From the NCBI GenBank assembly GCA_001600695.1, contig BCKQ01000005.1, forward strand, positions 859,820-923,819: a stretch of 64,000 bases of DNA, given 5' to 3'. The notes below the pieces were generated by a model. The model did not search any database. It worked only from the letters and a program-made list of their open reading frames with translations, and was not told the origin of the DNA. This DNA comes from Ascoidea asiatica JCM 7603 (lineage: Eukaryota; Fungi; Ascomycota). The position numbers were made by a program, and so were the translations under genes. How positions within the stretch are numbered: position 1 is the first letter of the stretch; every line of letters starts with the position of its first letter. This document shows positions 31,436-60,000 of the stretch, piece after piece.

Positions 31436-34400
31436 TTAATTAGAATTTTTCATTTTTTCTTCCATAATCTTATCTTCTTTGCTTTTCATACCATTAATTG
31501 TTTCCCAAATAATTTGTCCAGAATTTCCATACCCTGGTAAATTACTACATTTATCTCGAAAGTAATCAATATCTTTCATCATTATATTTTTTTCAATATC
31601 ATCTTTAAATTTAACTTTAGTATATTCTTCAATAACTTTTTTCTTATAATTATCAAAAATTTTTGATAATATAAATGAATATTGTAATTCAGATAAATTT
31701 TTAACTAAAACTCTTGCAATTGTACTAATATCTTTGACTAAAATTTCCATATATTTATGACAAATTTTTGGTAATATTATTGGTTCACTCCAATTGACTT
31801 CTTCAATTTCTTTAACTCTTGCAATAATTCTATCATTCATTATTGATATTAATTTATTAAAAATTTCTGTTTGATGTTTCTTTAAAATTTCAATTGTTTT
31901 ATTAATTTCTTCATTAATTCCTTTTTCATTGATATCATTTAATTCCTTGCTTTCTTTATTTTCTTCATTACCTTTTTCTTCTATATTTTCATTTTTCTCA
32001 TTCTTTTCATTACTTTTATTTTCAATTCCATCTATACTATTTTTTTTACCATTTCCATTAATATTCTCAATTGTTGTAGAATTTTTACCAAACTCAAAAT
32101 TTACTGGTTTTTCAATTTTTTTATCATTATTGAAATTTGGATTTAGTCTATTGAAACTTTTTTTAATTATTGGTAATAATCCCATCAAAAAATCAAGTGA
32201 TTGAGAACAAATTGCTAAATGTTTGACAGTAATATGTTTTAGTGATGATGTTCTTGTTGCTCCTGCTCCTAGAACTGAATTTTTACTTTTATTATTAATC
32301 ATTATAATTAAATCTAATAAATTTGTTTCATAATTTTTTTGAAATTGTGGAAATTTACTCATTAATAATATATAATCTTTAACTGCTTCTAATACATCAA
32401 TAATAAAATATGGTATTATATATTCTTTATCATTTATAATTAATGTATTTCCAGCTTGTTCTTTTTTGATTATTTTTTTCTCTTCTATTTTTTCTCCTTC
32501 ATTTATTTCTTTATTTTCTTCTTTGCCATCAGATTTATCTTCATTATTTTCACTTTTTGAATTGGTTTCAATTATTGGTGATTCATTATTTTTACTATTT
32601 TCACTTATGAAACTTGAAGTTTCATCAATATTTGATAAAATTGAATTATTTTCATTAATTCGATTAAATTCTTTTCTTAAATCAACAGAATCTTGCCATT
32701 TCTGAGGTTCTTTATCACCAGATTCAATTATTTCATCAAGAAGATTTTGAAACGTTGATGCATGTTTATAATCTTTCCAATTCTCTTTATCGATTTTTAA
32801 ACCAATTCTACTTATACAATTCTTATGAAATAAAAGTCCGTATTGATTAACATGTTTATCAAGTATATTTTTCAAATAGTTTTGTTTCATTGAACCTGAA
32901 ATATTAATATTTTCACATTCAACTAAAAAATAATAATTTAATAAATAAAATCTTGAAAAAAACTCAACAGAAGTTTGAACATTTAAATCTTGTCTAATAG
33001 TAATAATTTTTGCCATTCTTTTTTGAACCGTTAAAATACAATGTTCTATAGTTTTTGTAATATCTAATTTTATAATCAATTCACTAAAATTTTGTTCATT
33101 TTGAGAATCAATTGTATTCAAAGCAGTATCTAATAAAATTTTTTGATGTGATGTCAATCTTCTTAAACCTTCAGATAAATCACAATATATTTTAAATAAA
33201 ATTATCTCGAAATCTTTTGGAGTTAAAGATCTAATCGAATCAATTAATATTTGACTACCACTATTTTGTTGAATTTGATTTAAATTAATTTGACTTAAAC
33301 TTCTATTTCTATTATTCATTAAAGTTGTAGTTAGAGAAGCTGTTGAAGACATTCTTGAATTTGTAATTAAATTTAAATTTAAATTAGAATTAGAATTTGA
33401 ATTTGAATTTGAATTTGTACTTAAGTTTAAGTTTAAATGATTATTACTCCTATTACTACCTATTGAAGATACTGAATTTGTTTCAGAGCCTAAATTTGAA
33501 TTTGAATTTGATATAAAATTATCTTTTGAAGAAGGTAAATGATATTTTATAATATTTTTAAACTCAACAATTAATCTTTCTTCATAAGTTTTAAAGGCAA
33601 TTAAAATTTTATTACATTTAACAAGACCAAAAATATATTCATTTAAAATATTTCTAAAATTTATATTTAAGTTTAAATAATTTTTATTAATTTTTTTTTT
33701 ATTAGAATTTGTCTTATTTATAAAAGCAATACTTGAAGATTTTGAATGTCTTTTAATCATTGATAATTCTTTTGAAAAACTTTGAATAATTCTAAATAAA
33801 GTATCATCATAAGTTGTATTTTCATAATGATCTCTTAAATCAGTTATTAAAAAATCTAAAAATAAGTTTATATATGAATTACCAATTCTTTCAGTTAAAT
33901 TAGTTAAATCTTTTTTTAAAGGATTTAAAGAATTTAAATTATTTAAATTTAATAAATTATTTGAATTATTGAACTTTTTTAAAATATTAATTAAATTCAT
34001 AGGCCAAATTTTGATTTTTTCTTTATAATTTAAAATTGAAATTAAATCGCCAGAAATTAAAAATTTTATTAAATCTATTAAATTTAGAGAATTTAAAAAA
34101 TTTCCTTTAAAAAATAAAAAATCAATAGTTTTTTTTAAATTTAAAATTAATTGAATTTGATTAATTGAATATTGTAAATATTGAATATTATTTCTTTTAA
34201 TAATTTTTAATAAAATTTTTTTATTTTTTATAAAATTTAAATTTTTTAAATTTATTAATTTTTTTTCAATATTTTTCAGAATTTTTATTGAATCTTGAGA
34301 ATTTTTTGTAATTAAAGATAATTCATCTAAAGTATTAAAAAAAGAATCAGAAGATTTAGAAATTTCATTAATCAAATGAATTTCAATAATATCTAAATAC

Positions 34401-35593
34401 CAAGATAATTTTTCTTGTAATAGAGAATTATTTTCAAGATAAATTTCTGTTGCATTTGAATTATTATTACTATCATTATGATTATTATTATTATTATTAT
34501 CTGAAGAAGAGGAATTATTAATTGAAGAAGATAAAATTTTTGAATTTTCTATAACTTTATTAAAAATTCTTGGATTATCTAATCTAAAATTTTGTTGAAA
34601 GAATATTGAAGGTACATTTGATAAATCATTTGAAGTGTAATCATTATTTGTATTTATATTATTACTTATAGAATTATTAGTTGATTTATTATTTATATTA
34701 TTTATATTATTTGAATTATTTGAATTAATTGAAGATAAAGCATTTAAAGTTGATTGAGTTAATTTTCTATTATTTTCAAATTTATTAAATTCTAAATGAA
34801 TTGAATTTAAATAATTATCAAAAGATAAATTTTGTTTTTTATTAATTGGAGTTATATTTGATAATTTTACTCTTGGTATATCAAATTTTGAAGGAGAATT
34901 TAAATCAATTCTAAAATTATTATTAATTATAAATAAAGAATTTTTATTTTTATTTCTTTTTAAATCAGAATTTGAAATTAATTCAAAAATTGAATTTGGA
35001 CCTAATGGAGAAATTTTTGTTGAAGTTAAATTATTCATACCTAAATTATTTAAAGAAAAAGAATTATTAAAATTTATTGTATTTGAATCAAAACTTTGTC
35101 TATAAGAAGTTGAAATAAATGAAGAATTTGCAAAATCTCTATCATCATAAGTTGTATCATTATCATTTTCATTATTGGTAGTATTAATATTTGAGTTATT
35201 TAAATTTGAATTTAAATCTGAATCTATATATGAATCTAAATCAGAATCTGAATCAATTTTATTTTCTTTATCATCTTTATCATCCTTATCAATTGTATCA
35301 ATACTATTATCAATATTATTATTAATATTATTATTAATATTATTATCAATATTATTATCAATATTTTTCTTCTGCTGAAAATTAGAATCTGAATTATGAT
35401 TTGAATTAAGATTAGAACTATTATTTATATTCTCTTCACTATTACTTAATTTTTCATTTTGTTGTTGATTTTGATCATCTTTTGGTTTTTGATCTTTATC
35501 TTGATCATGATTTTCAGTTCCAGTTTCAATTTCATTTTCATTTTCATCGTCATCTTCTTCTTCTTCTTCAAGAACTATATTATCGTCATTCAT
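31436..35593 (-). CDS. VPS54: GARP complex subunit
   Basis: VPSIFFQQNFRLDNPRIF, LQEKLSWYLDIIEIHLINEISKSSDSFF, VLGAGATRTSSLKHITVKHLA. Confidence 0.95.
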   Translation of the reverse strand: MNDDNIVLEEEEEDDDENENEIETGTENHDQDKDQKPKDDQNQQQNEKLSNSEENINNSSNLNSNHNSDSNFQQKKNIDNNIDNNINNNINNNIDNSIDTIDKDDKDDKENKIDSDSDLDSYIDSDLNSNLNNSNINTTNNENDNDTTYDDRDFANSSFISTSYRQSFDSNTINFNNSFSLNNLGMNNLTSTKISPLGPNSIFELISNSDLKRNKNKNSLFIINNNFRIDLNSPSKFDIPRVKLSNITPINKKQNLSFDNYLNSIHLEFNKFENNRKLTQSTLNALSSINSNNSNNINNINNKSTNNSISNNINTNNDYTSNDLSNVPSIFFQQNFRLDNPRIFNKVIENSKILSSSINNSSSSDNNNNNNHNDSNNNSNATEIYLENNSLLQEKLSWYLDIIEIHLINEISKSSDSFFNTLDELSLITKNSQDSIKILKNIEKKLINLKNLNFIKNKKILLKIIKRNNIQYLQYSINQIQLILNLKKTIDFLFFKGNFLNSLNLIDLIKFLISGDLISILNYKEKIKIWPMNLINILKKFNNSNNLLNLNNLNSLNPLKKDLTNLTERIGNSYINLFLDFLITDLRDHYENTTYDDTLFRIIQSFSKELSMIKRHSKSSSIAFINKTNSNKKKINKNYLNLNINFRNILNEYIFGLVKCNKILIAFKTYEERLIVEFKNIIKYHLPSSKDNFISNSNSNLGSETNSVSSIGSNRSNNHLNLNLSTNSNSNSNSNSNLNLNLITNSRMSSTASLTTTLMNNRNRSLSQINLNQIQQNSGSQILIDSIRSLTPKDFEIILFKIYCDLSEGLRRLTSHQKILLDTALNTIDSQNEQNFSELIIKLDITKTIEHCILTVQKRMAKIITIRQDLNVQTSVEFFSRFYLLNYYFLVECENINISGSMKQNYLKNILDKHVNQYGLLFHKNCISRIGLKIDKENWKDYKHASTFQNLLDEIIESGDKEPQKWQDSVDLRKEFNRINENNSILSNIDETSSFISENSKNNESPIIETNSKSENNEDKSDGKEENKEINEGEKIEEKKIIKKEQAGNTLIINDKEYIIPYFIIDVLEAVKDYILLMSKFPQFQKNYETNLLDLIIMINNKSKNSVLGAGATRTSSLKHITVKHLAICSQSLDFLMGLLPIIKKSFNRLNPNFNNDKKIEKPVNFEFGKNSTTIENINGNGKKNSIDGIENKSNEKNEKNENIEEKGNEENKESKELNDINEKGINEEINKTIEILKKHQTEIFNKLISIMNDRIIARVKEIEEVNWSEPIILPKICHKYMEILVKDISTIARVLVKNLSELQYSFILSKIFDNYKKKVIEEYTKVKFKDDIEKNIMMKDIDYFRDKCSNLPGYGNSGQIIWETINGMKSKEDKIMEEKMKNSN

Positions 35594-38698: not shown

Positions 38699-39763
38699 TT
38701 AACGTAAGAAATAATTATATTTACTATGTTGTGCTCTATCATCATTTTGACCACCAGCTTTAAAATCCCATTTGATTTCAATATCAAGTTCTCTTTGATT
38801 AATTTTATTTGGTCTGGAAGCTAAAGATCCTTTAATTTTTTCACCTTTTCTAACACTTAAAACTTGATCTAAATAAAATACAGTTTGTTTCCAATGTGTA
38901 TAACGATGATGTGGTGATGTTGAAAATCTAACTTCATTTTTAAATGAATCTGATGGAAAAATAATATCAAACCATACAACCCAAGCATGAACATAATCAT
39001 CTCTTGTTGCAGTTAAAGTAAAATTTTTATGAAATGCTAAATCTTCAATTTTTACAGTATTAAGATCAAATTCAATCATATTATATGAATTTGTAACTTG
39101 TTGTTTTGATTCAACTGTATCAACTAATGGTTCTGCCATTGCAACTTCAATAAATGGTGAATAATCAAAACCATAAACATCTTCCCAAAAATTAATTTTA
39201 TCATCTTTATATTGAGCATCTTCAATAGCAGCAATATGAATTGAAGCTTTATCTGGAAAAATTAAACCATCTTTTTTTAAATATTTATCTCTTGCAACTA
39301 AAACAGTATCTAACATTGACTCATATAACAAAAAATAACCCATCCATTCAGAAATTATAATATCAACTTTTGGATATGGAAGTTCAACATCTTCTAATTT
39401 TCCTTTTAAAAGTGTAATTTTATCTTCTAAACCATTTAATGAAACAATTTTTTCTGCCATTCCAATAATATTTGACATATCAACAGCAATAACATGTTTT
39501 GCACCTGCTCTAGCTGCGAACATTGAAAGAATACCAGTACCACAACCAACATCTAAAACAATTTTATCTTTAAATAAATCTTTGTTTTTATAAATTGCTT
39601 GTCTATAAGATAATGTTCTTACATTATCTTTCAACATTTCTTCATGAATTCCAAAATGATCATAAGAAGAAAAATAATGTTGTTCTGTAAATGGAAGTTT
39701 GGCATTATCTGTGGCAGAATCCAAATGGTTTTCCAAATGGGCTTCGGTATTACTTTCAGACAT
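38699..39763 (-). CDS. HMT1: Type I protein arginine methyltransferase
   Basis: YFSSYDHFGIHEEMLKD, VLDVGCGTGILSMF, IISEWMGYFLLYE, THWKQ. Confidence 0.97.
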   Translation of the reverse strand: MSESNTEAHLENHLDSATDNAKLPFTEQHYFSSYDHFGIHEEMLKDNVRTLSYRQAIYKNKDLFKDKIVLDVGCGTGILSMFAARAGAKHVIAVDMSNIIGMAEKIVSLNGLEDKITLLKGKLEDVELPYPKVDIIISEWMGYFLLYESMLDTVLVARDKYLKKDGLIFPDKASIHIAAIEDAQYKDDKINFWEDVYGFDYSPFIEVAMAEPLVDTVESKQQVTNSYNMIEFDLNTVKIEDLAFHKNFTLTATRDDYVHAWVVWFDIIFPSDSFKNEVRFSTSPHHRYTHWKQTVFYLDQVLSVRKGEKIKGSLASRPNKINQRELDIEIKWDFKAGGQNDDRAQHSKYNYFLR

Positions 39764-40401: not shown

Positions 40402-43400
40402 ATGCCAAAAGGAAGAAGAAAGGGGGTGACCAAAACATCTAGTTCAAAACATTCTCATACGACTGTTAAGGATGAAGCATTTAATGATTTATTACAACAA
40501 AAATATAAAGGAAAAGATATATGTGATCCAATAAATACAGCCGAAGATAAATGGAATCTTTTACCTGCTTTTTTAAAAGTCAAAGGTTTAGTCAAACAAC
40601 ATCTTGATTCTTTTAATTTCTTTGTTGATATTGATATGAAAAAAATTATAGAAGCAAATCAATATATTTTTAGTGATGTTGACCCAGATTTTTATTTGAA
40701 ATATGTTGATATAAGAGTTGGTCAGAAATCAATTAGACAAACTTCTTCCAAATTCACAAATAAGAAAGCTAAACAAGTACCTCCAAAAGAAATTAATAAT
40801 CCTCCCCATGAATGTAGACTACGAGATTTAACTTATTCAGCTCCAATATATGTTGATATTGAATATACTAGAGGTAGAAAAATTATAATGAATAGAGATC
40901 TTGAAATTGGTAGAATGCCAATTATGTTAAGATCTACTCGATGCATTTTAGAAGGTTTAACTGATTCTAAAATGGCTAAATTAAATGAATGTCCCAAGGA
41001 TCCTGGTGGATATTTTATTGTAAATGGTGTTGAGAGAGCTATTTTAGTTCAAGAACAATTATCTAAAAATAGAATAATTGTTGAATCTGATGAAAAAAAA
41101 AATATAGTTCAAGCTTCTGTTACTTCTTCTACTCATGAAAGAAAATCAAAAACATATATTGTAACTAAATATAATAAAATTTATTTGAAACATAATTCTA
41201 TTTCTGAAGAAATTCCAATTGTTATAGCTTTAAAAGCTTCTGGAATAATTTCTGATTTAGAAATTTTACAAATGATTTGTGGTGATGATATTAATTATCA
41301 AGATATTTTTGCAATAAATTTCGAAGATCCTTTAAAAATGAATATTTTAACTCAAAAAGATGCTTTAGAGTATATTGGTCAAAGAGTTAAATCAATTAGA
41401 CGATTTAATGCTCCAAGATTAACTCCAATACAAGAAGGTATTGAATGTATTGCAAATACTATTATTGCTCATATATCTGCAGAAAATGGTTTAGATTTAC
41501 GTGAAAAGGGACTTTATATGGCAATTATGACAAGAAGAGTTATAATGGCCATGCATGATTCCACTATGGTTGATGATAGAGATTATGTTGGTAATAAAAG
41601 ATTAGAATTAGCTGGTCAATTAATGTCACTTTTATTTGAAGATTTATTTAAAAAATTCAATACAGATTTCAAAAATAATATTGATAAAGCTTTAAAGAAA
41701 TCAAATAGAGTTCATGAATTTGATCCTTTATTATCTATAAGTGTTTATTCAAATTATATTACAAGTGGTTTAGCAAATTCAATTTCAACGGGTAATTGGA
41801 GTTTAAAAAGATTTAAGATGGAAAGAGCTGGTGTTACTCATGTTTTAAGTCGATTATCATATATTTCAGCCTTAGGTATGATGACTCGTATTTCATCTCA
41901 ATTTGAAAAATCAAGAAAGGTTTCTGGTCCAAGAGCTTTACAACCTTCACAATTTGGTATGTTGTGTACCTCAGATACACCTGAAGGTGAAGCATGTGGT
42001 TTAGTTAAAAATTTAGCTTTAATGACACATATTACAACGGATGATGAAGAAGAAACTGTAACTGAATTATGTTTAAATTTAGGTGTTGAAGACATAAGAT
42101 ATGCTGATTATAATTCAATATTTATGGGAAATAATTATGGAATATATATTAATGGTAGTATAATTGGTTTAACAAAATTACCGAAAAAATTTTTAAGAAC
42201 ATTTAGAAAATTAAGAAGAAGTGGTAAAGTATCCCCATTTATTTCAATTTATGCAAATCTGTATCAACGTGCAATTCAAATTGCAACAGATTCTGGTAGA
42301 ATTTGTAGACCTTTAATAATAGTTGATAAAAATGGAAAATCTAAAGTTAAAGCAGACCATTTAAGAAAATTAAAATTGGGGGAATGGGAATTTGATGATT
42401 TTTTAAAAAATGGATTAGTTGAATATTTAGATGTTAATGAAGAAAATGATTCATTTATTGCACTTTATGAAAAAGATTTAGTTGTTGGAGATACAACACA
42501 TTTAGAAATTGAACCATTTACAGTTCTTGGAGCAGTTGCAGGATTAATTCCATATCCACATCATAATCAATCACCAAGAAATACATATCAATGTGCTATG
42601 GGTAAACAAGCTATTGGAGCAATAGCATATAATCAATTTAGAAGAATTGATACATTACTTTATACAATGTGTTATCCACAACAACCTATGGTTAAAACTA
42701 AAACAATTGAATTAATTGAATATGATAAATTACCTGCAGGACAAAATGCAACAGTTGCAGTTATGTCATATTCAGGATATGATATTGAAGATGCTTTAGT
42801 TTTAAATAAATCATCAATTGATAGAGGATTTGGTAGATGTCAAACATTTAGAAAAGAAACAATACTTTTAAAAAGATATTCGAATCATACAAAGGATATT
42901 ATTGCAGGTGTTAGAGTTGATGATAATGGAGATCCAATTTGGGAACATGGTACATTAGGACGTGATGGATTATCAGAAGTTGGATTAAGAATTAAAAGTG
43001 GACAAATATTTGCAAATAAATCAGTACCATTAAATACAGCACCAGGTACAGGTACAAGTACAGAATATAGAGAATCTCCACAAATTTATAGAGCTCCTGA
43101 ACCGAGTTATATTGATCAAGTATTATTAACAGAAACAAGTGGAGAACAACCATTAATTAAACTTTTAATGAGACAAACAAGAAGACCAGAACTTGGAGAT
43201 AAATTTTCTTCAAGACATGGACAAAAAGGAGTTTGTGGTATAATTATAAATCAAGAAGATTTACCATTTAATGATGATGGTATATCACCAGATATTATTA
43301 TGAATCCACATGGTTTTCCATCACGTATGACAGTTGGTAAAATGCTTGAATTAATATCAGGTAAAGCAGGGGTTTTGAATGGTACATTAGAATATGGTAC

Positions 43401-43914
43401 ATGTTTTGGAGGATCAAAATTAGAAGATATGTCAAAAATTTTAATTGATAAAGGATTTAGTTATTCAGGTAAAGATCAATTATATTCAGGTATTACTGGA
43501 GAATGTTTACAAGCATATATATTTTTTGGGCCAATTTATTATCAAAAATTAAAACATATGGTTATGGATAAGATGCATGCAAGAGCAAGAGGACCAAGAG
43601 CAGTTTTAACAAGACAACCAACAGAAGGTAGAAGTAGAGATGGAGGATTAAGATTAGGAGAAATGGAAAGAGATTGTGTTATAGCATATGGAGCATCACA
43701 ATTATTATTAGAAAGATTAATGTTATCATCAGATGTTTTTGATGTTGATGTTTGTAATAAATGTGGATTGATGGGATTTCATGGATGGTGTAATACATGT
43801 AAAAATAGTGAAGAAGTTATAAAAATGAAAATGCCATATGCAGCAAAATTATTATTTCAAGAATTATTATCAATGAATATAGCACCAAGATTAAGATTAG
43901 GAAATGCATTTTGA
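40402..43914 (+). CDS. RET1: RNA polymerase III second-largest subunit C128
   Basis: [49 protein letters not shown]. Confidence 0.98.
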
Positions 43915-44700: not shown

Positions 44701-45174
44701 TGCTATTGTTATGTATAATTGACTTGATTTAGTTGAATGAATATGAATTAAAATGGGAGTAATAATAATAGAAGTAGAATAAAGATTGTTTCGATTTTTG
44801 CTGTTTTATAAGCAAGCAAGGAGAAGAAGATGATCAACAAAAGAGGAAGAACAGAAGAAAAGAAGATGGTGCACCAGACGAGACTTCTCCGGCAGCAGCA
44901 ACACCGCCACATTAAGATCCGACAGCACCGCCACTCAAAAAAACGGATCGCAAGGCTTGAAAAATTAAGAAGATCCGTTAGTTTGGTCTCATTTGTATTT
45001 TTTGGGTTTTATTACTAATTGTAATTTCAATTACTAATAGATCTATTATCTATCAGCAATAGATTATATAAAGACAAAGATAGATAATTATAATAAAGAT
45101 AGAAGAATTAGAAGAAATATAATAGATAGAATTATCAATCTACTCAATTACTTCGATTGAAGCATAAAATCAAA

Positions 45175-46488
45175 ATGAATTCAATTTTTTTTGGGTATGA
45201 AGCCTTGAATAGAGTTTCTTTCTTGAGAAATGATTTAAAATTCATAAAATCATGTATTGAATTCAATGGAACAAAATTAATTTTTTTAAAAAATTTAAAT
45301 CCAATTTTAATTGCAACAAATTTTAATAAAGATAAAAATGATAAATATATTAAAGATATGAAAAATATTAAAAATTTAGAATTGTTTAAATTAGATATTA
45401 ATAAAAATTTAAAAATTAAAAATTATTTATCAAATTGGAATAATTTACATATCAATTTATCAAATTATATTTTAAATGATCAAAATAATTCAAAAGAATA
45501 TTTAAAAATTAAAAATGATTTATTAAATTATTCAAATATTTTATTCTTAGGTCTTGATGATTCAACTAATTTAGATAATAGCTCAAAAAATAACTTTATA
45601 TATAATAAAGCTTATAAAGGTATACCATATTTTGCAATTGATATTACAAATAATACTTTTTTGAATAATGAAATTAAAGATATTTTATTAAATACAAATC
45701 TTGATAGTAATCATTTATATCTTGATGATAATAATGAATTTATTGGTAATAAATTTAATTTCTTTGATCATTTAAAATTTTTAAATAACTTTAATGCTTC
45801 AATATTTTCTCAATCAAAAATGTATTTTGATTGGTTAAATAAAAATAAATTTTGTTCATCATGTGGTAATAAAATAATTTCAATAAATTCAGGTAATAAA
45901 TTATTTTGTACAAATGAGATTAAGGAAAATTGTTTAGAAAAATCAAAAAAATTTTCAAATTTATCATTTCCAAGAATTGATACTGCAATTATAACTTCAA
46001 TAACAAATTTTAAAAATGATAAAATTTTATTAGCAAACAATAAAAAATTTCCATCAAGAAAATTATATACAAATATTGCTGGTTTTTTAGAACCTGCAGA
46101 AACTTTAGAATCTTGTATAAAAAGAGAAATTTGGGAAGAAACAAATATTATTTCAAATAAAATTATTATTAATATTACTCAACCTTGGCCATATCCTGCA
46201 ACTTTAATGGTTGGTTGTATAGCATTTGTTGAATTTAATAATAATGATGAAATTATTAACCTTGGTCATGATCCTGAATTATATGATGCTAAATGGTTTG
46301 ATTGTTCATTTATTAAAGAATTAATTGAAAATAGAAAAAAATTGGAATCCTCAAAAGATGAAAATGAAATTGAATTGCTCAAATCCAAAACTGAAAATGA
46401 AATTATGTTGCCTCCAGTTGGTACAATTGCCTTTGAATTGATTAAAAATGTAGTTTATGGAAACTATCATAATTCAAATCATCTGTAA
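45175..46488 (+). CDS. NPY1: NADH diphosphatase (Nudix, NudC/NUDT12 family)
   Basis: LNRVSFLR, FCSSCG zinc motif, FPRID, Nudix box AGFLEPAETLESCIKREIWEET, TQPWPYPATLMVGC. Likely ATG at 45175. Confidence 0.93.
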   Translation: MNSIFFGYEALNRVSFLRNDLKFIKSCIEFNGTKLIFLKNLNPILIATNFNKDKNDKYIKDMKNIKNLELFKLDINKNLKIKNYLSNWNNLHINLSNYILNDQNNSKEYLKIKNDLLNYSNILFLGLDDSTNLDNSSKNNFIYNKAYKGIPYFAIDITNNTFLNNEIKDILLNTNLDSNHLYLDDNNEFIGNKFNFFDHLKFLNNFNASIFSQSKMYFDWLNKNKFCSSCGNKIISINSGNKLFCTNEIKENCLEKSKKFSNLSFPRIDTAIITSITNFKNDKILLANNKKFPSRKLYTNIAGFLEPAETLESCIKREIWEETNIISNKIIINITQPWPYPATLMVGCIAFVEFNNNDEIINLGHDPELYDAKWFDCSFIKELIENRKKLESSKDENEIELLKSKTENEIMLPPVGTIAFELIKNVVYGNYHNSNHL

Positions 46489-46777
46489 TAAATAGTTCTA
46501 ATTTATCATTTATATCATTTATGTCATTTATCATTTATATTAGTTACCTCAGGTTATATTATATAAATAAGAAGCCCCATAAAACTGGCTTCTTTTTTAC
46601 AATTATTTCATGTCAAAAGCCGAGAAGCCCAAAAAATGCAGCCCACGGCAGTACCGCCAATTCGGTTTCGTGTCTAAATTTAGAAATAATCAAAATGTAC
46701 AAAGGGCTAAATATTACTAATGTTAATGTTGTTTTTTTGTTATTGTTTTTAATGAGCATTTCTTCTTCAAACAGTCT

Positions 46778-47531: not shown

Positions 47532-48602
<1,071 letters not shown>

Positions 48603-50042: not shown

Positions 50043-53000
50043 ATGCCTCCGAAAGTAGAAAACGACTCAAAAAAGAGTCCAAATCAAAATAATAGAAAAA
50101 ATAAAGGTCGTAAATTAAATTTAAATAATGATCTTGATTCAATAATAAGTAATAATAATAATAACAATCATTATCAACAACAACCAGTACTTAATAGTGC
50201 TTATGGTTCTCCAGTTGGTTTTCAATCAAATGGTTTAAGATCTTCAAATCAAAATCAATCTTTTCAAAGTTATATGAATCAACAAAATCAACAACAAGCC
50301 AATTTAAATAAACCTTTTCATCGTAATCAAAAAAAGAAATATTCTAATAATTCTCAACCAAATAGTAATTTAGTTTCTCCTTCAAGTTCAACAACTTCTT
50401 TAACTTCTTTAAATTCAACAACTTCTTTAAATTCTTTAAATTCAACATCTTCTTTAAATTCTTTAGATACTTCATTATCAAAATTAAATTTAACTCCAAT
50501 TTCTGATTTAATTAATGAATTTTTATATGTTAATTCAATTTCTGAAATTAAAAAAATTTGTAATAAAATTATTCAAAAAATTTTAAATTCAACAATTGAA
50601 AATAAATTAAATTTAATTGAAATTTGGAATTTAAATTTAATTATTAAAACTTTATCAAAAAATAAAAATAAAAATTCAATTCTTATCAAAGAATCTTCTT
50701 TAATTCTTTTACAAACTTTAATTAAAAATTTATCAATTTATAATCCAAATGAATTATATTTTATAAAATTTTTAAATATAGTTTTAGATTTATTAAATGA
50801 AAAAGAAAATAATTTAAAAAGATCAACTCAATTAACTATAGATTTAATTTATAATTCAATTCCAATTCAAGCTTTATCTTCAATTTTATTACCTTTATTA
50901 TTAAATTATTTAAAATCTTCGGCAAAATGGATTTGTAAAATTGGTGCTTTAAAATTAATTAATAAAATTATTGAAGATTCTCCAAATGATTTATTAGAAT
51001 TTCAATTTTATGATACAATTCCAATTTTAACTGATATGGTAACTGATTTTAAACCAGAATTAGCTGAAATGGGTAAAAAAACAATTAATAATTTTGTTAA
51101 TATTTTAGATAATTTAGATCTTAAAAATAAATATCCAATAATTACTGAAACTTTAGCAAATCCAAAAAAAGTTCCTGATTGTATAAAAGATTTATCTTCA
51201 ATTACTTTTGTTGCTGAAGTTACTGAACCTGCTCTTTCTTTATTAGTACCAATTTTACATAGATCTATAACTTTATCGAATTCTTCTCAAGAACAATTAA
51301 GAAAAACTGTTATAATTATTGAAAATTTAACAAGATTAGTTAATAATAGAAGAGAAATTGAAAAATTTATACCAATTTTATTACCTTCTGTTAAAAAAAT
51401 TGTTGATAATGCTTCTTTACCTGAAGTTAGAGAATTAGGTGCAAAAGCTTTAAGTGTTATTGAAGATGCTAATAATCAAAAAGATGATCATAAATTTCAT
51501 GGTATCATTGATTTAGATACTTCAAAAGATTTAATTAAAGATAAAATTATTGATAATGATTTATTACTTAATTATCTTGGTACAATTATTCAATGTGATG
51601 CAAATGTTAATGATTGGAAAAGACTTCAAGAATTCCTTGAACAATGTTTTCAAGTTATTGATAAAAATGATAATTCTTCTGAAAATTTAGAACAAGAACT
51701 ATATATTCCTGAACTTATATTTTCTTCTGAAGATGAAAAAAAAAATTATATTGATTCTGTTATATCAAAATTAAGAATTATTTTTCATGTACCTGTAAAA
51801 TCTTCTTTAGATGATGGTATCGAAATTGTTAATGCCGATTTTTCTTTAGCTTATGGTAGTAGAATGTTATTAAATAAAACTAATTTACGTTTACTTAAAG
51901 GTCATAGATATGGTTTATGTGGTAGAAATGGTGCAGGTAAATCAACTTTAATGAGAGCTATTGCAAATGGTCAATTAGAAGGTTTTCCATCAAAAGATGA
52001 ACTTAAAACTTGTTTTGTTGAACATAAATTACAAGGTTCTGAAGCTGATCTTGATCTTGTTAGTTTTATTGCTCAAGATGAAGAACTTCAAAATGTTTCA
52101 AGAGATGAAATTTCTAAAGCTCTTGAAGAAGTTGGTTTTAATGATGAAAGAAGAGCTCAAAAAGTTGGTTCATTATCTGGTGGTTGGAAAATGAAATTAG
52201 AACTTGGTAGAGCTATGCTTATGAAAGCTGATGTTCTTTTATTAGATGAACCTACTAATCATTTAGATGTTTCTAATGTCAAATGGTTAGAAGATTATCT
52301 TATAAGTCATTTAGAAATAACTTCATTAATTGTTTCCCATGACTCCGGTTTCTTAGATATTGTTTGTTCTGATATTATTCATTATGAAAATAAAAAATTA
52401 GTTAATTATAAAGGTAATCTTTCTGATTTTGTTAAAACTAATCCAGAAGGAAAATCTTATTATACTCTTACTGATTCTAATGTTAAAATGGCTTTCCCAG
52501 CTCCTGGTATGCTTGCAGGTGTTAAATCAAATACAAGAGCTGTTGCTAAAATGACTGATGTAACATTTACTTATCCAGGTGGAACAAAACCATCTTTATC
52601 TAATGTATCTTGTGCTTTATCATTATCTTCAAGAGTTGCTATTTTAGGTCCAAATGGTGCCGGTAAATCAACTTTGATAAAACTTTTGACTGGAGAGTTA
52701 GTTCCTCAACAAGGAACTGTAGAAAAACATCCAAATTTAAGAATTGGTTATATTGCACAACATGCTTTACAATATGTCGAACAGCATAAAGAAATAACAG
52801 CTGTTCAATATTTACAATGGAGATATAGATTTGGTGAAGATAGAGAAGTTTTATTAAAAGAATCTCGTAAAATATCGTCAGAAGAAGAAAAGAAAATGAT
52901 GGAGCATGAATTTGAAATTGATGACGGACGTGGAAAAAGAGCTATTGAAGCAGTCGTCGGTAGACAAAAATTAAAAAAATCATTCCGTTATGAAATTAAA

Positions 53001-53705
53001 TGGAAATTTTGGTTACCTAAATATAATTCATGGGTAAGTAGAGAAAAACTTATCGAAGAAGGTTTTTCAAAGCTTGTTCAAAAATTCGATGATCATGAAT
53101 CATCTAGAGAAGGTCTTAGTGGTCTTGGTTTTAGAGATTCTTCTATAAAAGGAAATGTTGTAAAACATTTCGAAGATGTTGGATTAGATGGTGATATTGC
53201 TGAACATACTCCATTAGGCTCATTATCTGGAGGTCAACTTGTTAAAGTTGTCATTGCTGGAGCAATGTGGAATAATCCTCATTTATTGGTTTTAGATGAA
53301 CCTACAAATTATCTTGATAGAGATTCCTTAGGAGGTCTTGCTGTTGCAATCAGAGATTGGAGTGGTGGTGTTGTAATGATATCCCATAACAATGAGTTTG
53401 TTGGATCTTTATGTCCTGAACAATGGGTTGTTGAAAATGGTACTGTTGTTAATAAAGCCATTAAAGCAATTGATGAAAATAACTTTGAAGATGGTGGTCA
53501 TGGAAAACTTGCTAATAGAGCCTTAAATGCTCACATTACTGTTGATAATGATGATTCACCTGCAAATATCAAAGTCAGAACTAGAAAGAAGAAAATGACT
53601 AGAAACGAGAAAAAAGCAAGAGATGAAAGAAGACGTCTCAGATACATAGAATGGTTGTCAAGTCCAAAAGGTACACCAAAACCTGTTAATTCTGATTCAG
53701 AATAA
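50043..53705 (+). CDS. NEW1: eEF3-like ABCF ATPase New1 with N/Q-rich N-terminus
   Basis: HEAT region, two ABC cassettes (GRNGAGKST, GPNGAGKST), chromodomain insert, C-terminal RRLRYIEWLSSPKGTPKP. Confidence 0.95.
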   Translation: MPPKVENDSKKSPNQNNRKNKGRKLNLNNDLDSIISNNNNNNHYQQQPVLNSAYGSPVGFQSNGLRSSNQNQSFQSYMNQQNQQQANLNKPFHRNQKKKYSNNSQPNSNLVSPSSSTTSLTSLNSTTSLNSLNSTSSLNSLDTSLSKLNLTPISDLINEFLYVNSISEIKKICNKIIQKILNSTIENKLNLIEIWNLNLIIKTLSKNKNKNSILIKESSLILLQTLIKNLSIYNPNELYFIKFLNIVLDLLNEKENNLKRSTQLTIDLIYNSIPIQALSSILLPLLLNYLKSSAKWICKIGALKLINKIIEDSPNDLLEFQFYDTIPILTDMVTDFKPELAEMGKKTINNFVNILDNLDLKNKYPIITETLANPKKVPDCIKDLSSITFVAEVTEPALSLLVPILHRSITLSNSSQEQLRKTVIIIENLTRLVNNRREIEKFIPILLPSVKKIVDNASLPEVRELGAKALSVIEDANNQKDDHKFHGIIDLDTSKDLIKDKIIDNDLLLNYLGTIIQCDANVNDWKRLQEFLEQCFQVIDKNDNSSENLEQELYIPELIFSSEDEKKNYIDSVISKLRIIFHVPVKSSLDDGIEIVNADFSLAYGSRMLLNKTNLRLLKGHRYGLCGRNGAGKSTLMRAIANGQLEGFPSKDELKTCFVEHKLQGSEADLDLVSFIAQDEELQNVSRDEISKALEEVGFNDERRAQKVGSLSGGWKMKLELGRAMLMKADVLLLDEPTNHLDVSNVKWLEDYLISHLEITSLIVSHDSGFLDIVCSDIIHYENKKLVNYKGNLSDFVKTNPEGKSYYTLTDSNVKMAFPAPGMLAGVKSNTRAVAKMTDVTFTYPGGTKPSLSNVSCALSLSSRVAILGPNGAGKSTLIKLLTGELVPQQGTVEKHPNLRIGYIAQHALQYVEQHKEITAVQYLQWRYRFGEDREVLLKESRKISSEEEKKMMEHEFEIDDGRGKRAIEAVVGRQKLKKSFRYEIKWKFWLPKYNSWVSREKLIEEGFSKLVQKFDDHESSREGLSGLGFRDSSIKGNVVKHFEDVGLDGDIAEHTPLGSLSGGQLVKVVIAGAMWNNPHLLVLDEPTNYLDRDSLGGLAVAIRDWSGGVVMISHNNEFVGSLCPEQWVVENGTVVNKAIKAIDENNFEDGGHGKLANRALNAHITVDNDDSPANIKVRTRKKKMTRNEKKARDERRRLRYIEWLSSPKGTPKPVNSDSE

Positions 53706-54043: not shown

Positions 54044-57000
54044 TCATGCTTCAACAGCTAATTCTTCAAGCATTTTATAGTTACGTAACTCAATTGAACC
54101 ATTACCTGGTAATCTACTTGATCCCATTAAGTAATTATCTACAACACGAGCACATTGTCTTCCCTCTTGAATACCCCAAACAACTAATGATTGACCACGA
54201 CGGCAATCACCTGCTGCAAAAAGATTACTTTCATTATCAACTCTATAATCATTTTGCCCGGTAGTTGCAATTGTACCACGAGGAGTTTTCTTGGTTTCAA
54301 GTTGATCTGCTTCTGGTCCAAAAAAACCCATAGATAATAAAACAACATCGGCTGGGAAAACCTCTTCAGATCCAGGAACTTCAGCCATTTGCCAAGCACC
54401 AGAATCTGATTTTTTCCATTCAACTCTAACTGTTTTGATTCCCTTTACATTTCCTTCGCCGTCACCAATAAATTCTTTAGATAAAATGCAATATTCACGA
54501 GGATCTTTTCCATAATGTTCTTCAACCTCTACATGACCATAATCAACACGGAAAATACGAGGCCATTGAGGCCATGGATTATCTTTAGCACGTTCAGCTG
54601 GTGGATCTGGAAGTAATTCAAAGTTAACAACTGATTTTGCACCATGACGTGTTGCTGTACCTAAACAATCATTACCAGTATCTCCACCACCGATAACAAC
54701 GACATTTTTGCCAGCAAGAGTAACTCTAATATCTTCAAGCTCATTATCTAATAAGGCCTTGGTATTGGAACGAAGTAGTTGCATTGCGAACATAATATTA
54801 TTATTTTCACGACCAGGAATTTTTAAATCTCTTGGAATAGTTGATCCAACACATAGAATGACGGCATCATATTCTTCCTTAAGTTCTTCGACACTTATAT
54901 CTTCACCAACAGAAACATTGCATTCAAATGTGATACCTTCTTCTTCCATCAAATCAGTACGACGTTTAACAATTCTTTTATCTAATTTCATATTTGGGAT
55001 ACCGTACATTAATAATCCACCTGGTCTATCAGATCTTTCTAATACAGTTACCAAGTGACCAGCTTTATTCAATTGATCAGCGGCAGCTAATCCAGCAGGA
55101 CCGGAACCAACTACTGCAATTTTTTTACCAGTTCTAAACGTTGGAGGATTAGCTTTGATCCAACCTTGAGTGAAACCATGATCTATAATTGCAGCTTCGA
55201 TAGCTTTAATTGAAACAGGGTCATCAATTAAGTTAAGAGTACAGGCAGCTTCTTGACAAGGGGCAGGACAGATTCTACCAGTGAATTCTGGGAAATTATT
55301 GGTCATTAATAATCTCTGTAAAGCATCATACCATCTGTCTTTGAAAACAAGTTCATTCCATTTTGGAATAATATTAGAAATTGGACAACCACTATCAGAA
55401 GTACAATATGGAGTTCCGCAATCCATACAACGTGCAGCTTGATATTGAAGTTCTTCTTTAGTAAGACGAGAGGATAATTCTGACCAATCCTTGGTACGTT
55501 CTTTAACAGGTCTATATCTTTCTTTACGACGTTTATATTTCATGAATCCACGAATTTTATCAATTTTTTCGAACATTTTTTTTTCATGAGAAACATTGAT
55601 TATTGTATCCTCTAAATCTGCAACTTTAGGTTCTTTTGCAGTTTCTTTGAATGAAACTACTTTTTTAAGTTGATTTTTCATATGAGCTTTCTTTTTCATT
55701 ATTTCACCATTTGTAACATCGGATTCTGGATCTTGACGAATTGTTTTTATGAAACGCTCTCTTTCGAGCCTCTTAGCCTCTTCAGCTTTTCTCTTTTCTT
55801 CTTCCAAAACTTTCTTATATTCGGTTGGAAGAACTTTGACAAAACGTGGTAAGATACGATTAAAGTCAGAAAGTACCCTTTCACCTAGTTCTGAACCAGT
55901 GTAATGAACATGATCTTCAATTAAACCACGAACGAAAGCAATTTCAGCAGGATCACTTAATGTCATTAATTCAACCATTTCTGGGTTGATGTTTTCAGTA
56001 AGTTCTTGTCCAATATCTAATACATATGCAATACCTCCGGACATACCAGCAGCAAAGTTACGACCAGTTTTTCCTAAAACAATAACACGACCACCAGTCA
56101 TATATTCACAACCATGATCTCCTAGACCTTCAACCACAGCATTGGCTCCTGAGTTTCTTACACAAAAACGTTCAGCTGCAATACCCCTTATAAAAGCAGT
56201 ACCTGAAGTGGCACCATACAAACAAGTATTACCGATTATTATATTTTCTTCAGCTTTGAAAGTAGAACTTTTTGGTGGGTATATAATAAGACGACCACCT
56301 GATAAACCCTTTCCAACATAGTCATTAGAATCACCTTCTAATTCTAATGTTATACCTCTAGCAAGATATGCACCAAAAGATTGACCAGCATTACCTTTAA
56401 GATTAACATGAACAGTGTCTGTTGGTAAACCTTGTTCACCAAATTTTTTTGAAATACGGTATGATAATGTTGAACCTAAAGCACGATCAGTATTTATAAT
56501 ATCAGCTTCAATTGTAACTGGAAGACCACGGTCGAGAGTGATTTCGGATTCATCAATCAATTTATTATCAAGACGAACATGTAAACGATGATCTTGTTTC
56601 TTAACACATCGAGTAGCAACACCTGGACGAATAGTGTGAGCTGGTGTTAATATAGGAGATAAATCGAGATTAGCACTTTTTGTTGTTCTTAAGTCATCTC
56701 TAACCTTAAGTTTTTCAGCACGACCAACCATCTCATTAATTGTTCTAAAACCTAATTTGGCCATAATAGCTCTTAATTCTTGAGAAATATAATAGAAGAA
56801 ATTGATGACATGTTCAGGTGTTCCCTTAAATTTCTTTCTAAGTTCTGGATCAGAAGTAGCTACACCAACTGGGCAGGTATTTAAATGACACTTTCTCATC
56901 ATAACACAACCCATTGCAATTAAAGGTGCAGTTGCAAAACCCCATTCTTCAGCACCAAGCAAACATGCAACGGCAATATCACGTCCGGTTTTAAGTTGTC

Positions 57001-60000
57001 CATCAGTTTGAACAACAACACGACCTCTTAAATCATTGAGAACTAAAGTTTGATGAGTTTCAGCTAATCCTAATTCCCATGGTAAACCAGCATTTTTTAT
57101 ACCAGTCCAACGTGCAGCACCAGTACCACCATCATGACCAGAAATTAAAATATGATCAGCCTTAGCTTTTGCGACACCTGAAGCAATAATACCAACACCA
57201 ACTTCAGAGACTAATTTAACAGAGACTCTAGCTCTTGGATTAGAGCATTTAAGATCATAAATCAATTGTTTTAAATCTTCAATAGAATAAATATCATGAT
57301 GTGGTGGAGGAGAAATTAAGCCTACACCTGGTGTGGAATGTCGTGTTTTAGCAATAGAATTAGATACTTTATTACCTGGTAATTCACCACCTTCACCTGG
57401 TTTGGCACCTTGTGCCATTTTAATTTGCAATTCATCTGCATCAGAAAGATAGTATGAAGTAACACCAAATCTACCGGAAGCAATTTGTTTAATGGCTGAT
57501 CTCATAGTATCTCCATTATCGAAAACTATTGATCTTTCAGAATCTTCACCACCTTCACCGGTATTTGATTTACCACCCAATCTATTCATTGCAACAGCCA
57601 ATGTTGAATGGGCTTCCATCGAAATGGAACCATAAGACATTGCACCAGTGACAAATCTTCTAACAATCTCAGTCCATGGTTCAACCTGATCTATTGGAAC
57701 AGGTTTTGATGTTTCATAATCAAAATCTAATAACCCTCGTAAAGTACATTCTTTGATTGCTTGATATTCATTTTTAGAGTAAGCAGCATAAGCTTTTTCA
57801 TTTTTATTTCTTACAGCATCTTGAATATTTGCAATAGCAGTAGGATTATTTATGTGAGGATCTCCACCATCTCTCCAGTAATATTCACCAGTTTCAGGTA
57901 AAGCTTCTGGTTTTATAGTTTGTCTATCAGGGAAACCACGTTCATGTAAAGAAAAGGCATCTTGAGCAATATATTCAAAAGTTATACCTTTGATTCTTGA
58001 TGCAGTTCCTGCAAAACATCTGTCAACAACAGAATTATCAACACCTAATGCTTCAAAAATTTGAGCACCTTTATATGAGGCTAATGTTGAAATACCCATT
58101 TTAGACATAACTTTTAAAATACCACCATCAATTGAGTGTTTATAGTTTTCAATTACATCTTCATCAGTAATTTCCTTACGTAATAAGCCTTCATGGTTCA
58201 TTCTTATTAAGGTTTCCATGGATAAATAAGGATTGATTGCATCAGCACCATAACCAAGTAATACACACATATGATGAACCTCTCTAGCTTCGGCAGTTTC
58301 AATAATTAAAGCGACTTTTGATCTTTGTTTTTGACGAACTAAATAATGATGAACTGCACCACAGGCAATTAAAGCAGAAACTGGAATTTTTTGTGCGCTT
58401 GTTTTTCTATCAGAAAGTACAATAATACTTGAATTATTGATAATTGCATCAGATGTTTCTTGGCAAATTCTATCTATAGCATTAGTATAACCTAATAAAC
58501 CTTCGGATTTACTGAAAGTTATATCAATTGTTGAAACTGTATATTTTGGGAAAACTTTTGAAATATTGACTAAAGCTCTAAATTCAGGAATAGTTAAAAT
58601 TGGAGAATTTATTAAAATTCTACCACATTGAGCAGCTTTCATTTCTAGAAGATTACCTTGAGGACCAATATAACATTCTAAAGACATTACAATGCTTTCT
58701 CTTATTGGATCAATTGGTGGATTTGTAACTTGAGCAAATAATTGACGAAAATAATCATATAATAAACGAGGATTTTCAGATAAACAAGCTAAAGGTCCAT
58801 CATTACCCATTGAACCTAAAGCTTCTTTACCATCTTGAGCCATTGAAGATAATAAAAGATTTACTTGTTCATAAGAATAACCAAAAGATTTAAGTAAAGG
58901 ATCATATTGTACAGTTACATTACCAGATATGTCAACATCTAAGCATTGACTGAAACCTCTTGATTCAATTTTTTTAGTTAAATCTGGAATTGTTATTAAA
59001 TTTGCAGAAATCCAAGATTTGAAATCATTTCTTGAAGCAACTTTTTGTTTAAGTTCTCTATCATCGACAATTCTACCTTCTTTTGTATCAACTAATAACA
59101 TTCTACCGGGTTTAAGACGACCTTTATAAGCAATTCTTTCAGGGTCAATTGGTAAAACACCAACTTCAGATGCACAAATTATATGGTCATCATGAGTAAC
59201 ATAATAACGACAAGGTCTTAAACCATTACGATCTAAGTTTGCACCACAATATCTACCATCAGAGAAAGTAAATAAAGCAGGACCATCCCAAGGTTCCATT
59301 AAACAAGCAGCCCATTCATAGAATGCCTTTTTTTTTGAATCCATATTTGGGTTATTTTGCCAAGCTTCTGGAATCATAAGCATTATAGCTTCAGGTAAAC
59401 TTAAAACACCATTTATTATTAATAATTCAAGAACATTATCAACAGCAGCTGAATCAGAACCCCCTTCTTCGATTATTGGATATAATTTATCTAATTCATC
59501 ACCGAATAATTCTGAAGCCATTACACCTTCTCTTGCTCTCATCCAATTTTTATTACCACGTAAAGTATTAATTTCACCATTATGAGCAGCCCATCTTAAA
59601 GGTTGAGCTCTATCCCAGGATGGAAAAGTATTTGTTGAAAAACGAGAATGAACTAAAGCAAAATGACATTCATATTCAGAATTGACAAGATCATGATAAT
59701 AATTATAAACTTGTGCAGGTACTAATTGACCTTTATAAACAATATTTCTATTTGATAAAGAACAAATATAAAACCAATTATGTAAACCAATAATATGAGT
59801 TGATTGTTTTCTTAGTATATATAATTGAGTTTCAAACTGTTTTTGATAATTTAATTCGAAATCATCATTTGAAACTGATTTCATTGGAGTATTTGAAGTA
59901 CCATATAACGATTCTAGTACAACAACAGGTTGTAAAATTAATGGTTCTCTTGATAAAGCTGCTGGGCCTAAGATTGTTGAATCATGTGGTACTTTTCTCC

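Follow-up and report, generated by a model that had tools for sequence, protein, structure and literature searches.

The NPY1 locus

The stretch of Ascoidea asiatica JCM 7603 DNA analysed here (64,000 nucleotides of contig BCKQ01000005.1, positions 859,820 to 923,819; referred to as the window) carries a gene for an NAD(H) diphosphatase of the NPY1/NUDT12 type whose last sense codon is CTG. In this organism CUG is reported to be translated stochastically as serine or leucine, and the codon stands at the place where orthologous proteins have a peroxisomal targeting signal type 1 (PTS1). We asked whether the gene product is probably mixed at this position and, if so, whether the mixture looks like a device for sorting the enzyme between two compartments or like a rare codon that is merely tolerated. 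The features considered are collected in Table 1.

The open reading frame (ORF) encodes a protein that aligns from end to end with fungal NAD+ diphosphatases of the Npy1/NUDT12 group (33–46% identity) and matches the Pfam NUDIX family (PF00293, E = 1.9e-11) over residues 270–380; its homologs also carry PF09297. The invariant residues of the NUDIX region in our homolog alignment (A1) are E306, E309, R317, E318, E321, E322, Q336, P337, W338, P339 and P341. Downstream of the NUDIX box the window protein has the sequence TQPWPYPAT, a motif of the SQPWPFPxS type. The NUDIX glutamates, the zinc ribbon and the QPWP motif are the sequence criteria of the Npy1/NUDT12/NudC family, and judged by them and by the alignment the gene is an NPY1 ortholog. 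An Asn/Lys-rich insertion, which the orthologs do not have, lies near the N-terminus (window 45300–45540, approximately residues 45–120), and AlphaFold2 is unsure of part of it (predicted local distance difference test, pLDDT, below 50 at residues 54–61).

Table 1. Features of the window and elsewhere in the genome that are discussed in the text. Positions are those of the window unless a contig or locus handle is given.
Feature	Position	Strand	Basis or remark
NPY1 / NUDT12-type NAD(H) diphosphatase gene	45175..46488	+	437 codons plus stop; ORF list, Pfam NUDIX, homolog alignment
Zinc-ribbon cysteines C227, C230, C245, C253	45853..45933	+	Invariant columns in homolog alignment A1
NUDIX domain, residues 270–380, including QPWPYP motif at residues 336–341	45982..46314	+	Pfam match and alignment
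Codons AAT CAT CTG, C-terminal N-H-(L or S)	46477..46485	+	Place of the orthologs' PTS1
CTG, last sense codon of NPY1	46483..46485	+	Same in the contigs of all three runs
Tandem in-frame stops TAA TAA	46486..46491	+	NPY1 stop at 46486–46488
CTG in RET1 (RPC2), codon 620 (second of the window)	42259–42261	+
CTG in the VPS54-like gene, codon 439 (third of the window)	34277–34279	minus	Unconserved stretch
tRNA-Ser(CAG) gene 1	G000:C4:1039949-1040079 (L058:50-180)	+	Cloverleaf after intron removal
tRNA-Ser(CAG) gene 2	C11 near 18.9 kb (L059)	minus	Cloverleaf after intron removal
tRNA-Leu(CAG), single gene	about G000:C5:479233-479375	minus	About 380 kb upstream of the window
MDH-like gene with CTG as codon 362 of 363	L080:1486-2577	minus	Ends GAT CTG CTT TAA, -ID(CTG)L
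Multicopper oxidase gene with CTG as codon 559 of 561	L054:1102-2787	minus	Ends TCT CTG GGA GCT TAA, -IS(CTG)GA
VPS54-like gene	31436–35593	minus
Arginine methyltransferase gene	38699–39763	minus
RET1/RPC2 gene	40402–43914
MAP kinase gene	47538–48602
NEW1 gene	50043–53705
GLT1 gene	54044–60502	minus

The last codon of NPY1 is a rare CTG

The 3′ end of NPY1 reads AAT TCA AAT CAT CTG TAA TAA. Window positions 45100–46700 show zero differences from the contigs of three public sequencing runs from two studies (2016 and 2023), runs which possibly derive from the window's own source strain. A preliminary interpretation, made from the letters alone and called the sequence-only reading here, had placed CTG immediately before the stop, described leucine in this gene as mostly TTA, and regarded CTG as nearly absent elsewhere, with one codon in RET1 and none in NEW1. 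The ORF and the three sets of contigs agree on the end of the gene, and the leucine codons (TTA 35, TTG 8, CTT 4, CTC 1, CTA 0, CTG 1) bear out the second point. The third also stands, with one addition: CTG occurs just three times in the approximately 14,000 codons of the window's 21 long ORFs, at the end of NPY1, at codon 620 of RET1 and, additionally, at codon 439 of the VPS54-like gene. The CTG count of NEW1 is zero.

A 5′ splice site at CTG/GTAA, which would conceal a different C-terminus, was considered and rejected, since GTAATA is not the yeast 5′ splice-site consensus and since the ORF aligns with its orthologs to the last residues. The two tryptic C-terminal peptides, NVVYGNYHNSNHL and NVVYGNYHNSNHS, have calculated monoisotopic masses of 1529.70 Da and 1503.65 Da, respectively, and thus lie 26 Da apart.

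Competing tRNAs for CUG

The whole assembly (71 contigs, 20.3 Mb, 26% GC; the window is likewise 26% GC) was searched by sequence pattern for tRNA(CAG) genes, and the intron-removed forms of those found were folded by local scripts. An Rfam tRNA scan of the genome, in which 63 of 1,728 candidates were scored, missed every one of these genes, and ARAGORN misread the intron-bearing tRNA-Ser(CAG) genes. Both tRNA-Ser(CAG) genes have G73, A37, a long variable arm, variable and T arms that are Ser-like, and the D-arm GTGGTTAAGGC; they share the anticodon loop C-A-CAG-A-A, and their introns, of 49 and 50 nt, bear no relation to each other. The tRNA-Leu(CAG) gene has the loop T-T-CAG-G with A35, G37 and A73 and folds into a regular cloverleaf with an 8-nt D-loop, a G13:A22 mismatch and a 13-nt variable region. 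The gene is interrupted by an intron of 62 nt, carries a poly-T terminator and is 83% identical to the tRNA-Leu(AAG) of the same genome. tRNA-Leu(UAG) is encoded by one intron-bearing gene, on contig C33 (L060).

This set is the published complement of A. asiatica, namely two tRNA-Ser(CAG), one functional, regular tRNA-Leu(CAG) and tRNA-Leu(UAG) (PMC6041473). The regular tRNA-Leu(CAG) cloverleaf with an 8-nt D-loop and G13:A22 has been published as unique to A. asiatica within its order; Saccharomycopsis has aberrant tRNA-Leu(CAG) genes that go unused, and A. rubescens lacks the gene. The sequence-only reading had started from the decoding of CUG as Ser in the Ascoidea/Saccharomycopsis clade and stochastically as Ser or Leu in A. 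asiatica, and had proposed the tRNA(CAG) set as a check; the two Ser-type genes, the regular Leu-type gene and the single tRNA-Leu(UAG) gene place the organism in that clade and are the set described for the stochastic decoder. Published proteomics of A. asiatica found 53.9% leucine and 45.0% serine at CUG sites, position by position. Because serine and leucine tRNAs with the same CAG anticodon compete, the terminal CUG of NPY1 is probably read either way. Judging from the tRNA genes and the published proteomics, the NPY1 product is probably a mixture of -NHL (leucine) and -NHS (serine) made from one mRNA, the two ends that had been predicted.

Several further features of the tRNA genes were recorded. 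Both tRNA-Ser(CAG) genes have A33 in place of the near-universal U33, and their acceptor stem (GATACAG) is nearly identical to that of tRNA-Leu(CAG) (GATACTG). The copy on C11 has two N within its intron. The 94-nt genes that ARAGORN calls 'tRNA-Leu(TAG)' (L010:906-999, L012:1297-1390 and similar ones) were rejected as such: their loop reads CTTTTAG and is followed by an intron, and they look like intron-containing tRNA-Lys(UUU). In places tRNA genes are densely clustered, as many as five of them within 3 kb (L012, L010, L016 and L017; contigs C19, C4 and C15), and the clusters recurrently combine Phe(GAA), Glu(TTC), these 94-nt Lys-UUU-type genes and Leu(TAA).

Frequency and placement of CTG in the genome

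A sample of 99 ORFs (47,208 codons) contains CTG at 0.36 per 1000 codons, or 0.4% of the leucine box; the published genome-wide CUG share of leucine codons in A. asiatica is 1.3%. The ratio CTG/CTA in the sample (0.18) is not below TTG/TTA (0.063) or CTC/CTT (0.066), and the rarity of CTG is therefore mostly a matter of AT bias.

The codons that do occur are unevenly placed. Three of the 17 independent CTG codons in the 99 ORFs fall within the last three codons of a gene (P = 1.6e-4), in NPY1, an MDH-like gene and a multicopper oxidase gene; without NPY1 the count is two of 16 (P = 0.0045), on what is a small sample of 17 codons. The last 60 codons of genes hold six of the 17. Neither the MDH-like protein nor the multicopper oxidase has an end that forms a PTS1 under the leucine or the serine reading. 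The other CTG codons whose context was inspected (11) lie in hydrophilic, unconserved stretches. Within the window, codon 620 of RET1 aligns with serine in S. cerevisiae RPC2 and with leucine in human RPC2, so that the site tolerates either residue. Codon 439 of the VPS54-like gene lies in a stretch that has no solved relative, the Pfam Vps54 domain being far downstream at residues 1056–1155. Placement in tails and in hydrophilic, unconserved stretches accords with the rule, already published, that CUG is retained only at sites where the identity of the residue is of little consequence.

Another very AT-rich yeast contig (L064), from a Logan assembly of 28% GC, has two CTG codons in 2,734, and one of them begins the closing run CTG CTT GCT GGT stop of a GDPD gene (L064:6673-7581, +); the NPY1 of the same contig ends in -ELN and has no PTS1.

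The C-terminus as a targeting signal

Of 130 homologs of the window protein, 111 have I, L or M as their final residue and 81 close with x-[KRH]-[LIVMF]. Typical ends are SKL, AKL, TKL, NKL, SKM and PKI, and the last alignment columns of the orthologs read -KL, -SL or -NL. Since these ends are mostly PTS1-like, the CTG sits at the key residue of an ancestral PTS1. Npy1 is peroxisomal in S. cerevisiae and in D. hansenii, and the S. cerevisiae protein ends in -SHL; its sequence and the literature thus agree with what the sequence-only reading had said of it. That reading had also called -NHL non-canonical at position -3, and measured against the Saccharomyces consensus [A/S/C/P]-[K/R/H]-L (PMC13343957) it is: N at -3 lies outside, H at -2 fits, and L at -1 is present only under the leucine reading. 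No other of the 130 homologs has H at -2, and the window protein is the only one in which it stands together with N at -3. The broad PROSITE microbody pattern, [STAGCN]-[RKH]-[LIVMAFY], would accept -NHL. The same tripeptide is reportedly the C-terminus of Candida boidinii dihydroxyacetone synthase.

In the AlphaFold2 model (mean pLDDT 76.7) the last helix spans residues 418–428 and is followed by coil, with pLDDT below 50 at residues 435–437, which suggests that the C-terminus is probably free and accessible. We give -NHL about an even chance of being imported at all. Two roles have been described for Npy1, the hydrolysis of NADH in peroxisomes and the removal of NAD caps from cytosolic RNAs; loss of NPY1 in D. 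hansenii gives no beta-oxidation phenotype. NudC/NUDT12 enzymes are homodimers, and since oligomers can enter peroxisomes, -NHS subunits could be taken in as partners within mixed dimers; a codon read 50:50 need not then yield a 50:50 split between compartments.

Conservation and recurrence of the terminal CTG

Two word-based protein searches, one with the whole NPY1 protein and one with residues 205–437, returned nothing above 50% identity and no named protein from the Ascoideales. The nearest NPY1 homologs that we found come from Logan assemblies and were placed in a quick tree, in which the window protein pairs with homolog P0007 (Shimodaira–Hasegawa-like approximate likelihood ratio test 91, long branches). 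P0007 derives from a 44% GC assembly with few CTG codons, those in Ser-like contexts, and its NPY1 ends in -AKL with the leucine encoded by CTA. Two other close homologs, P0011 (from a 28% GC assembly) and P0006, end in -ELN and -LNN and have no PTS1. The terminal CTG is thus not shared by the nearest homologs found, among which there are no Ascoidea orthologs.

Peroxisomal enzyme families were then sought in this genome and their last codons read, which gave 12 proteins with PTS1-type ends: catalase (-SRL), malate synthase (-TKL), Fox2 (-VKL), carnitine acetyltransferase (-PKL), SCP2 (-AKL), two enoyl-CoA hydratase/isomerases (-SKL, -HKL), a thioesterase (-SKL) and four acyl-CoA synthetase-like proteins (-SKL, -SRL, -SKL, -IRL). 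Their terminal leucine is encoded by TTA in eight, TTG in one, CTA in two and CTT in one; CTG is the last codon in none of the 12. Of the two malate synthase paralogs (L067 and L068, on C6 and C4), one has the PTS1-like end -TKL and the other ends in -IDL, which is no PTS1; the sequences suggest a peroxisomal and a cytosolic isoenzyme.

How often a terminal CUG should arise by chance was estimated from the reported total of 4,936 CUG codons in A. asiatica, about 7,700 genes (derived from the published Table 1), and assumed values of about 470 codons per gene and ~60 PTS1 proteins that end in leucine. By chance roughly ten genes should have CUG last, and of the ~60 PTS1 proteins 0.2–0.8 would have it absent selection against CUG; the single case of NPY1 is within chance.

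Interpretation

The reading that we favour, and hold with moderate confidence, is that NPY1 tolerates a rare CTG at a C-terminus under weak constraint, where targeting is weak or dispensable and the product is a mixture of -NHL and -NHS. The final CUG would be read as serine or leucine by the competing CAG tRNAs, and one NPY1 mRNA would give two proteins. The -NHL form would expose a weak PTS1-like end, with which import by Pex5 is possible, and the -NHS form would be cytosolic unless carried in within a mixed dimer. Any division between peroxisome and cytosol would then be a by-product of the codon and no selected device. That CUG is tolerated rather than selected is argued by the absence of CTG from the other 12 PTS1-type ends, the chance-level expectation for a single case, the presence of CTG in other gene tails and the different ends of the nearest homologs, and further by the Asn at -3 that falls outside the yeast consensus, by the absence of H at -2 from all other homologs and by the lack of a beta-oxidation phenotype on loss of NPY1 in D. 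hansenii. Several points weigh on the other side. Most homologs close with I, L or M, and CUG at this site departs from the published statement that it is never found at conserved Leu or Ser positions. Asn at -3 recurs in four orthologs, as -NKL. A split of Npy1 would make biological sense given its work in both compartments, and a neutral third-position G should decay quickly in a genome of 26% GC.

The sequence-only reading had gone further and proposed a functional use of the ambiguity, which would split the product of one mRNA between peroxisome and cytosol. In such a selected device, a sense-codon analogue of PTS1s made by readthrough, the CUG would be kept so that -NHL serves NADH hydrolysis in the peroxisome and -NHS serves NAD-cap removal in the cytosol, at a fixed ratio. 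Several observations speak for it: both tRNA(CAG) types are present and functional-looking, the residue is the key PTS1 position of the orthologs, Npy1 has roles in both compartments, the model shows the tail as exposed coil, CTG has been retained in the face of strong AT bias, and dual targeting by recoding has precedents (PMC4207609, PMC4359377, PMC5133446). The comparisons nevertheless speak against it. Neither conservation of the codon in the nearest relatives found nor its recurrence in peroxisomal proteins, by which recoding-based dual targeting would be recognized, was seen, and the sequence-only reading had itself named a terminal CTG neither conserved nor enriched as refuting the idea. 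One instance equals the chance expectation. Two further proteins have CTG close to their ends, at -2 and -3, without forming a PTS1 under either reading, and a weak tripeptide by itself already gives partial import, so that the codon would be unneeded. The tests that were run thus do not support an adaptive switch, and we consider it highly improbable.

Alternatively, the signal may already have been lost, so that neither -NHL nor -NHS works, Npy1 is cytosolic and the tail, free to drift, could acquire a CUG. Asn at -3 is outside the yeast consensus, its combination with His is unique among the homologs, P0011, P0006 and others have lost the signal, and two unrelated genes also have CTG within their last three codons. 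Yet H at -2 and L at -1 match the -SHL of S. cerevisiae Npy1, the four -NKL orthologs show Asn in the same place, and -NHL fits the broad PROSITE pattern; we regard complete loss as unlikely, though deserving of some weight. A single C-terminus and no split would also result if CUG were decoded essentially one way in this strain, either as leucine or, given a silent tRNA-Leu(CAG) like that of Saccharomycopsis, as serine. Most Ascoideales do keep a tRNA-Leu(CAG) gene that is unused in translation, but the non-functional genes of Saccharomycopsis have aberrant cloverleaves, whereas the gene here is regular, has all leucine identity elements and is as described only for A. asiatica, and the gene numbers (two Ser, one Leu, one Leu-UAG) match that species. 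One-way decoding is therefore a very doubtful explanation. A tolerated CUG with a mixed product remains the interpretation that we prefer.

Comparison with known systems

The closest system is the stochastic decoding of CUG in A. asiatica itself (Muhlhausen et al. 2018, PMC6041473), from which a mixed Ser/Leu residue at the end of NPY1 follows directly. As in that study, CUG is rare here and found chiefly at unconserved hydrophilic sites. Its authors, who saw CUG at no conserved Leu or Ser position in 26 cytoskeletal and motor proteins, treated the ambiguity as purely deleterious (PMC6041473); the CUG of NPY1 differs in occupying a position where leucine is the key targeting residue in orthologs. 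Stochastic CUG in A. asiatica is regarded as a purely harmful leftover of the code change, avoided wherever the residue matters, and NPY1 offers a concrete, easily testable case of ambiguity at the key residue of a sorting signal, in an enzyme with jobs in peroxisome and cytosol. A non-deterministic code would have a cell-biological consequence if the cell made both C-terminal peptides and imported -NHL alone. Should the codon prove conserved or needed, a use for a stochastic code would be shown; if not, NPY1 would be a clean example of ambiguity tolerated at weakly constrained ends. Were the selected device true after all, sense-codon ambiguity would for the first time be seen to serve protein sorting, and a stochastic genetic code to bring a benefit. 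A full-text literature search for 'CUG codon' with 'PTS1' returned no relevant paper linking CUG decoding to PTS1.

In Candida albicans, tRNA-Ser(CAG) is mischarged with leucine at about 3% (cited in PMC6041473), and CUG is likewise a statistical mixture of serine and leucine. There, however, the mixture comes from one mischarged tRNA, amounts to a few per cent and involves no targeting signal, whereas decoding of the A. asiatica type has two competing tRNAs at about 50:50.

Cryptic PTS1 motifs are generated by stop-codon readthrough or alternative splicing in fungal glycolytic enzymes and in mammalian LDHB and MDH1 (PMC4207609, PMC4359377, PMC5133446). What is predicted for NPY1 resembles these systems in that one gene gives two C-termini at the level of translation, with a PTS1 on one of them, so that the protein is localized to both cytosol and peroxisome in a ratio set by decoding. 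In the cryptic PTS1 systems the signal lies in an extension past a leaky stop, is conserved across species and has been shown experimentally. The case of NPY1 is unlike them in having a sense codon read ~50:50, no extension and no conservation found, and in being predicted from the sequence.

S. cerevisiae Npy1 (P53164), a peroxisomal NADH pyrophosphatase that also acts in NAD-cap decapping, shares with the window protein the zinc ribbon, the NUDIX domain, the QPWP(F/Y)P motif and an end of the form x-H-L. It has Ser at -3 where the window protein has Asn, and the long N-terminal Asn/Lys-rich insertion and a terminal leucine that comes from an ambiguous CUG are features of the window NPY1.

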